A DNA stretch of 64,000 nucleotides from Octopus sinensis (GCF_006345805.1 NC_043004.1:48112001-48176000), one strand, 5' to 3'. Shown: positions 43,882-60,008, counted from the stretch's first letter. The notes: a model not told the origin generated them from the letters alone. Numbers and translations are program-made.

Positions 43882-45349
43882 CTACATTTTTTTTATTTTC
43901 TTAAGGGCCAAACTTGCTATAGCCTTTTTGTCAATTTTGCCACTAGCCAAAAGTGGAAATGAGAGAAAATATAAAATGTAATCAGGATGCATAGATACAC
44001 AATCAAAGTTATCTGGATCCGGCATTGAATCCGTACAAAACTTTTTCAATTCTTCTTCATTGAACTCGTGATTTGGCCGAACGGTAACGCACGCGCATAC
44101 ACGTTCTCCTACCGCCTGGTCAGGGATTGGCACAACAACCACAGCATCTACACTCGGATGACGTCCGATGTAATCTTCAATATGTTTAATAGATAGCTTT
44201 ACTGTACACTTCTTAATAAAATCTGTGCTTCTTCCAACCATTATGAGGTCACCATCTTCAGTTAAGTAACAAATATCTGATGTTGGATACCAACCATTTT
44301 CTAAGCATGAAGTACCATCCAGATGCGTTTTTGTTACCCATTTACTTCGAAAATACAAATAGCCTGTCTTTCCAATATCCACAACTCTCTTCTCCTCGTC
44401 AACAATTTTGATTTCTGTTCCTGCAGGTGGTCGCCCGAGCATTCCTTGTCGATGTTCTGAAATATTTTCTGGGGTAAAAATTCGAAGAGATATGAGGAAA
44501 GCTTCAGTACTTCCATAAGCAACTAAGAAACTATCTGCAATTTTAAACGTATGTTCTATTTCATCTCGGGTAATCACATCTCCACCTGATATTACCATAT
44601 TAACTCGGAATTCGCGATCGCTAAGTCGTTTCAAATCCTGTGGCGAAATACCAACTAAGTTGCATTCTTCACTCTGCCATATCTTTATAACAAAATCGAG
44701 GTTCTTCGGATCATTCAACATTTCTACGTCTCCACCGACATGCACTGATCCTCTGGTTAGCACAGACAAAGGATATCCTCCAATATATCCCATTGGACGA
44801 CTATTAAATGAAGTAAAATAAGAAGTCTCCTTAAAATCTGAATCTGGCAAGTTTAAGTAATTAAAATGGCTGTGACAAATACATTTAGGCACACCAGTGC
44901 TTCCTGAAGTCTGATTGATGGAAGCAATATCTTCCGGGTCAATGTAAGGAAACTCAACCTCGTCATCGTCGCTTACTTCTGCCATCAATTTAGCAGCAGA
45001 TAAAGCATTGGCTGGCCCATGTGTATTGGATACATCAATGGCAAATCTCAAATCGGGACACGCTTCGCTAGATACTTTTCCATTATCGCTTATTTGTGCA
45101 ATGGATAAGAAACTGTCCCAAATAGATTTGGATCCAAATACAACAGCACTACATCCTTTTATAATAGATTTCATATCTGCTAATCCAAACATTAATCGCA
45201 TAGAATATGCTCCCGTCATCATGATTCCAATATCGTAGCTCATCCATTCTACACAGTTAGGAACACAAAATGCAATCTTGTGTCCTTTTTCAATGCCTAG
45301 TTTCATCAAAGCCTTTGCGAACTTCACAGCTCCATCGTACATCTCTTTC
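43882..45349 (-). CDS. ANL enzyme copy 2, intact large terminal exon; no own exon 1 found
   Basis: 486-aa ORF, paralog of copy 1 (QTSGSTGVPK, YGSTE, TSDIC, LASGK). Acceptor ttttctttgcAG lies 5' of 45349; the exon starts G|AAA GAG ATG (phase 2) and ends at TAG 43882-43884. Confidence 0.88.
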
Positions 45350-46265
45350 CTGCAAAGAAAAGTGACATATTTAACATATATGCTCCTAAGTACATAGTTG
45401 CATAATATAGTAGTTTTTTACATTTCTATATCATATTAAGAAAGTGCAAATAATAGTCTAATCTACCAAGAGAAATCTCAGCGATTTTTATCATGTGGTA
45501 TATATGGCCAAGGTAGTAAATCCTGAATTCACCACCACCACAGTACACTTCGACCCTCTTTGCAATCAACTGAATATACACACATGTGTGTGTCTGTATA
45601 TATGTATGTCTGTAGCTCTTATCTCATGCTTGTTTCACTCACTGGACTGCAACCATACTGAGGCATTTCCTTGAAGTTTATCAAATCGGAACAGTTATTT
45701 TTCTTATTCAATCCGTCATTTTGCCGATCCGCTAGTATACTAGGACGTAAATATATCAATACCGGTTGTCAAGCAGTGGAAGAAACAAACACAGACGAAA
45801 ATACACATGCACACACGTACACACGCATACATGCACATGCGCACGCACACACACACACATACACACACACATTGACACACATTCATATATGTGTCCTTTT
45901 GCCGAGTGAGCCTCAGCCATGCTATTGAGTGCTCTTTTTTCAGTCAGTTGATATTGAGCAGATAGATAGATAGATAGATAGATAGATAGATAGATAGATA
46001 GATAGATAGATAGATAGATAGATAGATAGATAGATAGGTCTGAAGGTCTTCCGTACAGTTTCCGTCTACTCAGTTCACTCACAAAGCACTGGAAAGTCCA
46101 GGGCTACATTAGAAGACACTTGATCAAGACTAAACCGGGTTCTTAACCACAGAGACCTGCCTGCTATTATATACATACGTATATATATATATATATATAT
46201 ATATGTATATATATATATATATATATGAAAGAAGGTTTGAAAATGCAATTTTAAAAGATGTTTAT

Positions 46266-46309
46266 TTACTTTACCGGTTTCACTTTTTAGAAAAGATTGT
46301 CAAAAGTAA
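46266..46309 (-). ncRNA. Minimal type I hammerhead, U3:A8 variant, sense to the ANL pre-mRNA
   Basis: UUACUU-UUGACAA-U-CUUUU(cua)AAAAG-U-GAAA-CCGG-UA^AAGUAA, with a perfect 6-bp stem I. Confidence 0.7.
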
Positions 46310-46904
46310 CATGTAAAAGTTTGGTTGTGTTAATTATTGGTTGTCACAAAATGCTACAATACATGCTTTGGTAACAAGAACATGTTAAGAACATAAAAAA
46401 GTTTAACAAGTTCATAAAAATATTGGGCACAAAAGATTACAACATATATATACATTCTCAAGAAAATGTTAAAGACAGTTTCCAGAAGGAATTATTAAAA
46501 AGTTCAGTAGAATATTGGTATTGTATCTGTATATACATATACGCACAGAATATGGTTGTCACAAAATACTACAATACATATATGCATTCTTTGGTAACAA
46601 GAACATGTTCTTAAGATGTCCTGAAAATTTGACACAGCCTTGGTTTTGTTGTCTCATTTTATTATTATTATTATTATTATTATTATATATATATATATAT
46701 ATTATATATATATATATATATATATCTATATATATATATATATATATATATATATATATATACATATTTATATATATGTACAGTTACGTTCCTAGACCAC
46801 CTGCGAATATTGGACGTAGTTCATAAAAATACCAATAATGTCAAAATATGACCTCATATATGTGTGTGTATATATATATAATATATATATATATATATAT
46901 ATAA

Positions 46905-57980: not shown

Positions 57981-58454
57981 ACATTATTAATTAAATTATA
58001 CGAAAATTAAAACCAAATACCATTGAGTTGAATGTTGTAATGATCACACACACACATGCGCACAGAGATTCACACACACACACACACACACACGCACACA
58101 CATATATATATATATTGTTCAAATGTACAGAAAACTAAAGACAATGACAGGTGAGAGAACAACAAGCAGCCCCAGAACAATGGAGAAGTCTTTGGCAGAA
58201 AGGGATAAGGGGGAGAAATGGAAAGACAGCTAAAAAACGGAAACAGCAAAAATTGTTTGTTGAGATTAATTGTTCAACATGATGAAATGACCCGAAGAAA
58301 GAGGTTGAGTGAAGGGGAGATAATAAGAGTGAATGTATGTATGTATGTATGTATGTATGTATGTATGTATGTATGAATATTTGCATGTACGTATGTATGT
58401 ATGTATGTATGTAAGCATATACACATATAAATATATTTAACGAAGCATGTCGCC

Positions 58455-58460
58455 TTTATT
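58455..58460 (-). terminator. Candidate polyadenylation signal AATAAA of copy 3
   Basis: tttatt on the + strand, ~85 nt past the stop. The site homologous to the copy-2 signal is mutated to AACAAA. Confidence 0.35.
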
Positions 58461-58543
58461 TAGAAGGAAACCTTAGCACGTTAACATGTTAAACATGGAA
58501 AACTAAAATACACGTTTGTTAATCTTGGTAATTTAATTTATTA

Positions 58544-60008
58544 CTACATTTCTTTAATTTTCTGATAGGCCAAGCATTTTATAATCTTTTTGTTAAACTT
58601 GCCACTGGCCAAAAGTGGAAATGAAGGAAAATATAAAATATAATCAGGGTGCATCGATACACAATCAAAGTCATCTGGATCCGGCATTGTTTCCGTACAA
58701 AACTTTTTCAATTCTTCTTCATTGAACTCGTAATTTGGCCGAACGGTAACGCACGCGCATACACGTTCTCCAACTGCCTGGTCAGGGATTGGTAAAACAA
58801 CCACAGCATCTACACTCGGATGACGTCCAATGTAATCTTCAATAAGTTTAATAGATAATTTTACTGTACACTTCTTAATAAAATCTGTGCTTCTTCCAAC
58901 CATTATGAGATCACCATCTTCAGTTAAGTAACAAATATCTGATGTTGGATACCAACCATTTTCTAAGCATGAGGTGCCATCCAGATATGTTTTTGCTATC
59001 CATTTACTTCGAAAATACAAATAGCCTGTCTTTCCAATATCCACAACTCTCTTCTCCTCGTCAACAATTTTGATTTCCGTTCCTTCAAGTGGTCGACCCA
59101 AAATTCCTTGTTGATGTTCCGGAATGTTTTCTAGTGTAAAAATTCTATTAGTTATGTAGAAAGATTCAATACTTCCATAAACAACTAAGAATGAATCTGC
59201 AACCTTCAAAGCATTTTCTATTGTATCCCGGGTAATGATGTCTCCACCTGACATTATCATATTGACACGGAAATCGCGGTCGCTCAGTCGCTTCACATCT
59301 TGTGGTGCAACATTAACCATGTTACATTCTTCACTCTGCCATATCTTTATAACAAAATCGAGGTTCTTCGGATCATTCAACATTTCTACATCTCCACTGA
59401 CATGCAATGATCTTCTGGTTAGCACAGACAAAGGATATCCTCCACCATATCCCATTGGCCGACTGCTAAATATGACAAGAGAAGTGTCCTTAAAATCTAA
59501 ATCCTTGTTGTTTAAGTATTCAAAATGGCTGTGATAAATACCTTTGGGCACACCAGTGCTTCCTGAAGTCTGATTGATGGATGCAATATCTTCTGGGTCA
59601 ATGTTAGGAAACTCAACTGCGACATCGTCGCTTACTTCTGCCATCAATTTAGCAGCAGATAAAGCATTGGCTGGTCTGTGTGTATTAGACACATCAATGG
59701 CAAAACTCAAATCAGGACACGCTTCGCAAGATACTTTTCCATTATCGCTTATCTGTGCAATGGATAAGAAATTGTCCCAGATAGATTTGGAACCAAATAC
59801 AACAGCACTGCATCCTTTTATAATAGATTTCATATCTGCTAATCCAAATATCAGTCTCATAGAATATGCTCCCGTCATCATGATGCCTATATCGTAGCTC
59901 ATCCATTCCACACAGTTAGGAACACAAAATGCAATCTTGTCTCCTTTTTCAATGCCTAGTTTCATCAGAGCCTTTGCGAATTTCACAGCTCCATCGTACA
60001 TCTCTTTC
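58544..60008 (-). CDS. ANL enzyme copy 3, intact large terminal exon; exon 1 lies outside the window if present
   Basis: Paralogous ORF (QTSGSTGVPK, YGSIE, TSDIC, LASGK) with the same acceptor context as copy 2, 5' of 60008, phase 2, stop TAG at 58544-58546. The ORF-track extension to 60052 is intron read-through. Confidence 0.88.

Follow-up and report, generated by a model that had tools for sequence, protein, structure and literature searches.

The window analysed was a 64,000-nucleotide stretch of Octopus sinensis DNA (CM016866.1:48,112,001-48,176,000), in which positions 43882 to 60008 hold two large exons of an enzyme-coding locus. The DNA is that of an animal, AT-rich and rich in repeats. 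Three large open reading frames (ORFs) on the minus strand encode AMP-binding (ANL) enzymes without an N-terminus and are termed copies 1, 2 and 3. The window was extended to position 88106, coordinates past 64000 being window-equivalent, and the joined stretch of 88,106 nt contained zero Ns in both window and extension. Read in gene orientation it consists of exon 1B, second exons ("bodies") A, B and C, a body fragment, body D, copy 3, copy 2 and then a copy-1 gene. All bodies lie on the same strand, collinear downstream of exon 1B, which is ~14 kb past the window end; copy 2 lies 32.6 kb from exon 1B, with five poly(A)-bearing bodies intervening. The two exons at positions 43882 to 60008 probably close, at its distal end, a tandem array of alternative last exons of one ANL gene. 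The copy-1 gene is a separate, complete two-exon gene, RefSeq XP_029639695.2 (543 aa) corresponding to exon 1A joined to copy 1.

The ORFs of copies 2 and 3 run unbroken on the minus strand, at 43882-45342 (486 aa counted from an internal Met) and 58544-60052, respectively. The two Pfam domains used to judge ANL membership, PF00501 (E 1e-35 to 1e-40) and PF13193 (E ~1e-8), were found in all three window copies. The ANL core motifs tested were A3 (TSGSTGxPKG), A5 (YGxTE), A8 (GRxxDxIK) and the catalytic Lys of A10; copies 2 and 3 carry TSGSTGVPK, YGSTE, GRSTDFIKK and SGK(F/I)DKK, and G198, T200, P203, K204, E330, R421 and K519 were invariant in a 30-sequence family alignment. The best sequence matches among solved structures were aryl-acid adenylating enzymes, namely DhbE (E 7e-30) and salicylate-AMP ligase. 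The RefSeq product name 'ACSF2-like' is an automatic one, and the cephalopod ANL clade is only 24-26% identical to human ACSF2 (PMC4899746). The PF00501 match begins at profile position ~25-29 across the three window copies (25-28 of 384 in copies 2 and 3), so that approximately the first 25 profile positions lie outside the body exon.

The body exons begin at 45349 in copy 2 and at 60008 in copy 3, where the acceptors read ...ttttctttgcag/GAAAGAGATG (the slash marks the splice point), one base ahead of the first full codon, i.e. in phase 2. Intact bodies all begin cag/G in phase 2, and the polypyrimidine tract, AG and phase are kept by every intact body in O. sinensis, O. vulgaris and O. bimaculoides; all of them thereby offer the common donor, AT/GTAAGT at exon 1B, an acceptor that is usable and in phase. 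Poly(A) signals of the form AATAAA or ATTAAA lie at most ~90 nt from each stop of copies 2 and 3. The original prediction had described both copies as intact ORFs with many synonymous differences and a poly(A) signal each, and this description holds (AATAAA for copy 3, ATTAAA and AATAAA for copy 2; the differences are quantified below). It had further matched the acceptors to an exon 1 ending in TT. Their phase, AG and polypyrimidine tracts are as described, but the array exon ends in AT, which gives Met at the junction, and only the copy-1 exon (1A) ends in TT. A first exon had been placed beyond position 64000 and was located there by the extension search, and the suggested count of first against second exons across the cluster gave two against seven bodies and one fragment over the gap-free 88 kb (Table 1).

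Four NCBI coding sequences (CDSs) share the single ATG of exon 1B and terminate in four different bodies. Isoform X1 (XP_029640038.1) ends in body A, X5 (XP_029640041.1) in B, X2 (XP_029640039.1) in C and X4 (XP_036361266.1) in copy 3, the last with an exact residue match and a CDS end at 58544. For O. bimaculoides, RefSeq predicts a junction of exon 1 with the first of three bodies, b1 (X2), or, with b1 skipped, with the second, b2 (X1).

Table 1. Positions of the array members, their splice and poly(A) signals and the neighbouring features, in window coordinates (window-equivalent past 64000). A slash marks a splice point.
Feature	Position	Strand	Basis or remark
Exon 1B, single first exon of the array (MSSYLHTKEDSQVSYETIPERLRKRAEKYPDRVTIVCYDAEFKRHQIT; MSSYLHTKED...HQIT; ends AT/GTAAGT)	78106-77961	-	extension search
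Body A	77132-75656	-	extension
Body B	73703-72245	-	extension
Body C	71387-69920	-	extension
Body fragment, 200 nt	69868-69668	-	extension
Body D, dead	68773-67310	-	extension
Copy 3 (body E), 3'-terminal exon, residues 50-536 and stop	60008-58544	-	ORF, Pfam, last exon of RefSeq X4
Copy 3 acceptor, polypyrimidine tract and AG (AG 60010-60009)	60009-60068	-	kept in O. vulgaris and O. bimaculoides orthologs
Copy 3 poly(A) signals, AATAAA	58542-58537, 58460-58455	-	sequence
Copy 2, intact body exon	45349-43882	-	ORF, Pfam, selection tests
Copy 2 acceptor, polypyrimidine tract and AG (AG 45351-45350)	45350-45409	-	identical in O. vulgaris
Copy 2 poly(A) signals, ATTAAA and AATAAA	43876-43871 (ATTAAA), 43854-43849 (AATAAA)	-	sequence
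Exon 1A of the copy-1 gene (MASYIHTVG...HQIT; ends TT/GTAAGT; 146 nt)	9637-9492	-	RefSeq
Copy 1 body exon	4080-2595	-	ORF 2595-4073, Pfam
RefSeq first coding exon of copy 2 (MSRPCFLY...VGLM; 38 codons; donor AT/GTAAGT)	47819-47706	-	XP_036361267.1, tblastn
Insert carrying the preceding exon, bounded by 130-bp direct repeats	46894-47864	-	repeat comparison
pogo/Tigger DNA transposon remnant, upstream of copy 2	48625-50000	-	Pfam DDE_1, HTH_Tnp_Tc5
Second pogo/Tigger remnant, upstream of copy 3, 93% identical to the first	61697-63065		collinear position
GIY-YIG ORF, Penelope-like retroelement	52329-53186	+	Pfam
Degraded LINE (long interspersed nuclear element) reverse-transcriptase fragment	57263-57979	+	also at the orthologous O. 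bimaculoides site, 90.5% identity

The locus was compared with those of O. vulgaris, which diverged from O. sinensis ~2.5 million years (My) ago, and O. bimaculoides, which diverged ~34 My ago (PMC10700109). Three overlapping O. vulgaris loci from an independent assembly were merged into 54.9 kb with zero Ns. The order there is one exon 1, bodies A, B and C, an extra intact body, body D (merged locus 22317-23779), copy 3 and copy 2. A collapsed or incomplete assembly, named beforehand as a hazard, was ruled out by the absence of Ns in O. sinensis and by this same order in O. vulgaris. O. bimaculoides has one exon 1 followed by bodies b1, b2 and b3, among which pocket sequence and tree pair b2 with copy 3 and b3 with copy 2 as orthologs; the spacer in this species contains N gaps and is a weaker witness for layout. 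Each of the O. sinensis bodies A to D matches the b1 unit. Since the duplicated unit starts ~200 nt past exon 1, exon 1 itself was left uncopied. In all three species a common 5' part precedes a tandem row of paralogous terminal exons that carry individual stops and poly(A) signals, and the array is a real anatomical feature conserved over ~34 My. Body D is a dead member of it and serves as an internal control for disuse. A 1-nt deletion common to O. sinensis and O. vulgaris shifts its frame (AGT GGA GAC to AGC GAG ACG TAG), and its acceptor has changed from AG to AA in O. sinensis only, the AG being intact in O. vulgaris.

Only in the three Octopus species was an array of exon 2 alone observed, Argonauta hians having been judged from its proteins. 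Four tandem A. hians paralogs (GAB1606483-6486) resemble the Octopus array in being tandem paralogs of the same two-exon gene and differ from it in having three distinct exon-1 sequences, one of them common to two near-identical duplicates. They are read, from the protein sequences, as products of whole-gene duplication, and the "isoform X2" names among them were rejected as signs of the same design since there is no single common exon 1. A further O. bimaculoides locus (XP_014790470.1, 540 aa; CM046608.1:37,600,278-37,626,414) forms a complete two-exon gene of its own, on the chromosome of the array but 55 Mb from it. Its exon 1 is nearly identical to the array exon 1 and its pocket is copy-2-like; either dispersed duplication or misplacement in the assembly accounts for it.

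The 49 residues of exon 1 are conserved in all relatives found, down to a Watasenia luciferase-like protein (39% identity), and align with DhbE residues 24-53. An AlphaFold model of isoform X4 had a predicted local distance difference test score (pLDDT) of 86 and a predicted template modelling score (pTM) of 0.85. Its exon-1 part forms a helix (18-28) and two strands (33-38 and 44-48) at pLDDT 86-96. In Foldseek the model matched CahJ, FscC, benzoate-CoA ligase and luciferase with template modelling (TM) scores of 0.75-0.79 over ~555 columns. In this predicted model the complete two-domain ANL fold with its N-terminal strands is obtained only with exon 1 attached, and the bodies thus appear to need exon 1 for the fold, losing the helix and both N-terminal strands without it. 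The internal Met of KEMYDG is replaced by Ile (ATC) in O. vulgaris body C (merged locus 17163) and by Val (GTG) in O. bimaculoides b1 (position 11777 of its locus, L005). It is therefore not a conserved start codon, which adds to the conservation, the DhbE alignment and the model as evidence that the bodies need exon 1.

Copies 2 and 3 differ by ~65 synonymous and 86 nonsynonymous changes, giving synonymous (dS) and nonsynonymous (dN) divergences of 0.25 and 0.079 and a dN/dS ratio (omega) of 0.32; pairwise omega among bodies was 0.25-0.5. Substitutions private to copy 2 numbered 11 synonymous to 9 nonsynonymous against a neutral expectation of ~4:16 (P = 5e-4), and those private to copy 3 numbered 11:11 (P = 1.4e-3). 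Between copy 2 and O. bimaculoides b3, dN was 0.046, dS 0.197 and omega 0.23 (P = 2e-10), far from the value near 1 that the original prediction had raised as an objection to itself; between copy 3 and b2 omega was 0.34. These substitution patterns indicate purifying selection on both copies and suggest that both are in use.

Differences among the bodies cluster in alignment columns ~155-200 (around SRPMGYxGGYP) and ~250-300 (around YGSTE), and the predicted difference in substrate pockets is borne out by this concentration in two pocket segments. The two segments align with DhbE residues 234-240 and 329-337, which reportedly set aryl-acid specificity. Omega in the pocket segments, which were picked post hoc, was 0.5-1.3, and 2.3 for B versus C, against 0.16-0.34 elsewhere. 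Positive selection in the pocket is unproven as the segments were chosen after the variation had been seen, and the pattern was taken as relaxed or diversifying evolution. Trees built from pocket codons grouped the bodies by orthology, whereas the remaining codons, even third positions alone, grouped them by species. Outside the pocket, within-species paralogs (dS 0.09-0.17) are closer than between-species orthologs (dS ~0.22). Since the pocket follows orthology and the rest follows species, gene conversion homogenises the scaffold within each species while the pockets stay distinct.

The spacer between the two copies (45350-58440) had been described as consisting wholly of transposable elements (TEs), microsatellites and intron, with no homolog of the copy-1 first exon. 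The second part of this description was upheld. No exon-1 homolog was found in the spacer by tblastn with both exon-1 peptides (E <= 1000, word size 2) or by blastn, and exon 1 with 1 kb of nucleotide flanks gave only chance or microsatellite matches. A diverged exon 1 between the copies was ruled out by these null peptide and nucleotide searches with both exon 1s. Exon 1 was likewise not found in the O. vulgaris spacer between copy 3 and copy 2 (14.3 kb of gap-free assembly). The first part was correct as to TEs and microsatellites, both of which were found, but the spacer also contains a RefSeq-annotated first coding exon of copy 2. This exon is without homology to the ANL N-terminus. It is present in O. 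vulgaris and is not conserved in O. bimaculoides, where homology stops at 47867. It sits in a 1.7-kb stretch without counterpart in the collinear region upstream of copy 3, within an insert whose 130-bp direct repeats (47864-47735 and 47022-46894, 97.7% identical) lie around a CT-rich core of ~710 bp. The upstream repeat gives the ATG and most of the annotated exon; the second has the same ATG, but continues into a TA microsatellite.

The two pogo/Tigger remnants are more alike (93%) than the coding exons of copies 2 and 3 (85%) and were not detected at the orthologous O. bimaculoides sites. This suggests that either the two upstream regions recently underwent conversion or elements of a single family inserted twice. 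The block at 57979-57263 was rejected as a conserved promoter or first exon, being a degraded LINE reverse-transcriptase fragment at the orthologous site. ORFs 15564-16799 (+) and 52329-53186 (+) share a C-terminal region, only the second scoring for GIY-YIG in Pfam, and were taken to be Penelope-like retroelement ORFs, the second truncated. Long compound microsatellites at 10960-12448, 58330-58420 and 60280-60560 (TACA/TATG-type, read as YIHT repeats) give rise on both strands to spurious ORFs as long as 370 aa. The window also contains an inverted repeat pair (63707-63994 and 13936-13630, 92% identical) and a neighbouring ORF at 12845-13303 that is transposase C-terminus-like by eye and had zero Pfam matches.

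The following mechanism is proposed. The ancestral gene would have comprised exon 1 (49 codons) and exon 2 (~487 codons, stop, 3' untranslated region and poly(A) signal). Repeated duplication downstream of a single exon 1 would, in Octopus, have been confined to exon 2 and part of its upstream intron. Transcription would begin at one promoter and exon 1B, the exon-1 donor would be spliced to one body acceptor, and the mRNA would end at the poly(A) site of that body, distal bodies being reached only by polymerase read-through of proximal poly(A) sites. The bodies would retain a common catalytic scaffold and differ in substrate-pocket residues, giving a set of isozymes from one 5' end. Both the junctions in vivo and the read-through are inferred. 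Use of exon 1B by copy 3 is backed by structure, by selection and by predicted RefSeq models in two species. For copy 2, structure and selection are as for copy 3, but a species-restricted 5' exon of its own is annotated, and its use of exon 1B is a serious possibility that falls somewhat short of probable. The first exon that the original prediction had shared between the two copies is accordingly matched at copy 3, which model X4 joins exactly, and not at copy 2, which no model joins. The widest form of the proposal is put forward tentatively and is rather doubtful. In it all intact bodies, copy 2 included, would be fed by one exon 1 and promoter, five or six pocket variants would be chosen by tissue or condition through read-through, conversion would keep the scaffold uniform and selection would keep the pockets distinct.

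Several observations weigh against a shared first exon. The RefSeq isoforms are predicted models, none of which joins exon 1B to copy 2, and the protein clusters of the isoforms contained only NCBI/UniRef models with zero transcript-derived members, an exact look-up of X4 giving no record. The first 28-68 nt are identical across bodies, so short junction reads cannot tell the bodies apart and some isoforms could be mapping artefacts; a junction read becomes unique to copy 3 with an overhang of at least 28 nt, copy 2 requires at least 68 nt, and bodies A, B and C require 58-68 nt. Models X3 (XP_036361265.1) and X6 (XP_029639698.2) are chimeric, their first ~200 residues coming from C or D and the remainder from copy 3; the joint, close to body codon 195 (GGYP), is without GT-AG, so that part of the evidence underlying the RefSeq models is unreliable. 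They are regarded as artefacts or as traces of a recombinant haplotype and may have come from template switching, chimeric transcript assembly or an unequal-crossover haplotype in the RNA donor. The O. vulgaris annotation makes each body its own gene with an internal-Met start. Finally, gene conversion is active in the array and could prolong the life of an unused ORF.

The annotation of separate genes is what would be expected if the bodies lacking an exon 1, copy 2 at least, were independent genes, each with its own promoter, a non-homologous 5' exon or an internal Met and a product that is truncated or altered at the N-terminus, the shared-exon isoforms being a minority or artefact. RefSeq treats copy 2 in this way, with a 526-aa product (XP_036361267.1) that runs through the annotated spacer exon by a consensus GTAAGT donor in the right phase and a 486-aa product that starts at the internal Met. 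The exon also lies inside a copy-2-specific insert, which could have brought a promoter. Even so, independent genes are unlikely. The 5' exon is not conserved in O. bimaculoides though copy 2 has been kept there for ~34 My, and three annotation pipelines supply three unrelated 5' fillers for these same bodies; O. bimaculoides RefSeq gives the copy-2 ortholog an unrelated 13-codon start, and older JGI (Joint Genome Institute) models use other fillers, partly TE-derived. The internal Met is missing in two intact bodies, and without exon 1 a protein would miss a conserved helix and a pair of strands in its N-terminal domain.

Trans-splicing of the kind described for Drosophila mod(mdg4), with bodies transcribed from their own promoters and exon 1 joined in trans, would also produce a common 5' exon with many variable 3' exons, and would account for the use of a body as remote as copy 2, which lies past five poly(A)-bearing bodies and has signs of its own upstream exon. 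It is nevertheless very improbable. Cis-splicing is enough for bodies that follow exon 1 in order on one strand, and nothing speaks positively for trans-splicing. No conserved complementary or shared intronic element was found between intron 1 and the regions upstream of the bodies, where no 10-mer was common to three or more bodies. Dscam-like docking and selector complementarity was rejected on the same 10-mer search. Equally improbable is that the distal bodies are unused partial duplicates, their ORFs held open only by conversion from a functional proximal body and their isoforms being mis-mapped reads, for although concerted evolution outside the pocket, ambiguous junction reads and chimeric models would fit such pseudo-exons, the lineage-private substitutions, which conversion has not erased, are strongly short of nonsynonymous changes, omega is 0.23-0.34 for copy 2/b3 and copy 3/b2 over ~34 My, pocket identities are preserved by orthology, and body D exemplifies genuine disuse in this array, with a frameshift and later the loss of the acceptor.

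The locus is judged to be a real array of alternative last exons, of a general design known from insects and with isoforms implicit in RefSeq. The original remark that no such arrangement was known for ANL enzymes was sustained in that a literature search found no paper describing a variable-last-exon arrangement for ANL enzymes; it was weakened in that the variable-3'-exon design is known and the isoforms were already in RefSeq. If the widest form of the proposal is true, the locus would be the first described variable-last-exon array for ANL enzymes and an Octopus-specific isozyme switch conserved for at least 34 My, in the clade of the firefly squid luciferase candidates. The array illustrates how the substrate pocket of a large enzyme can be diversified while promoter and first exon stay single, and it is a compact natural case in which a scaffold evolves in concert and the specificity residues keep their divergence. 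No question of long standing is opened by it. In practical terms, the annotation pipelines are in serious disagreement at this locus, where they give shared-exon isoforms and chimeras as well as TE-derived fillers and starts at the internal Met, and cephalopod ANL or "ACSF2-like" gene counts and short-read expression analyses are unreliable until resolved with long reads.

The Watasenia scintillans crystal luciferase candidates wsluc1-4 fall in the same ANL clade as the Octopus array, O. bimaculoides proteins being the nearest relatives (PMC4899746); gene structure is not described in that paper or in PMC7708342. Watasenia luciferase-like protein 4 shares 39% identity with copy 2, and the N-terminal segment is found in it too. 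Octopuses of the genus Octopus are not known to be luminous.

Among enzyme genes the closest parallel is Anopheles gambiae GSTD1 (aggst1-alpha), in which a common 5' exon is reportedly joined to one of several tandem 3' exons that encode the substrate-binding part. Similar insect glutathione S-transferase (GST) genes with alternative 3' exons exist. GSTD1 is like the Octopus array in being an enzyme gene in which one promoter yields several isozymes through duplicated 3' exons; it differs in encoding a GST rather than an ANL enzyme, in having four variants and in its smaller variable part. In Octopus the variable exon makes up ~90% of the protein, and the part outside the pocket is homogenised within species. 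Drosophila lola and mod(mdg4) have common 5' exons followed by a long row of alternative 3' terminal exons (PMC4387717, PMC13490949). As in the Octopus array, each terminal exon has its own end, but these genes encode BTB-domain transcription factors whose zinc fingers vary. mod(mdg4) further employs trans-splicing from independent promoters, with some exons on the opposite strand, whereas the Octopus bodies are collinear on one strand. In UGT1A and the clustered protocadherins, variable 5' exons, each with its own promoter, are joined to a constant part. These genes share with the Octopus array the production of many isoforms from one duplicated specificity exon and a constant part. Variable exons at the 5' side with their own promoters are not what the array shows; its single-copy exon is 5' and its variable exons are 3', which makes it the mirror image that had been predicted. 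In UGT1A and the protocadherins the choice among isoforms is made by promoter, whereas in Octopus it would be made between splicing and polyadenylation.

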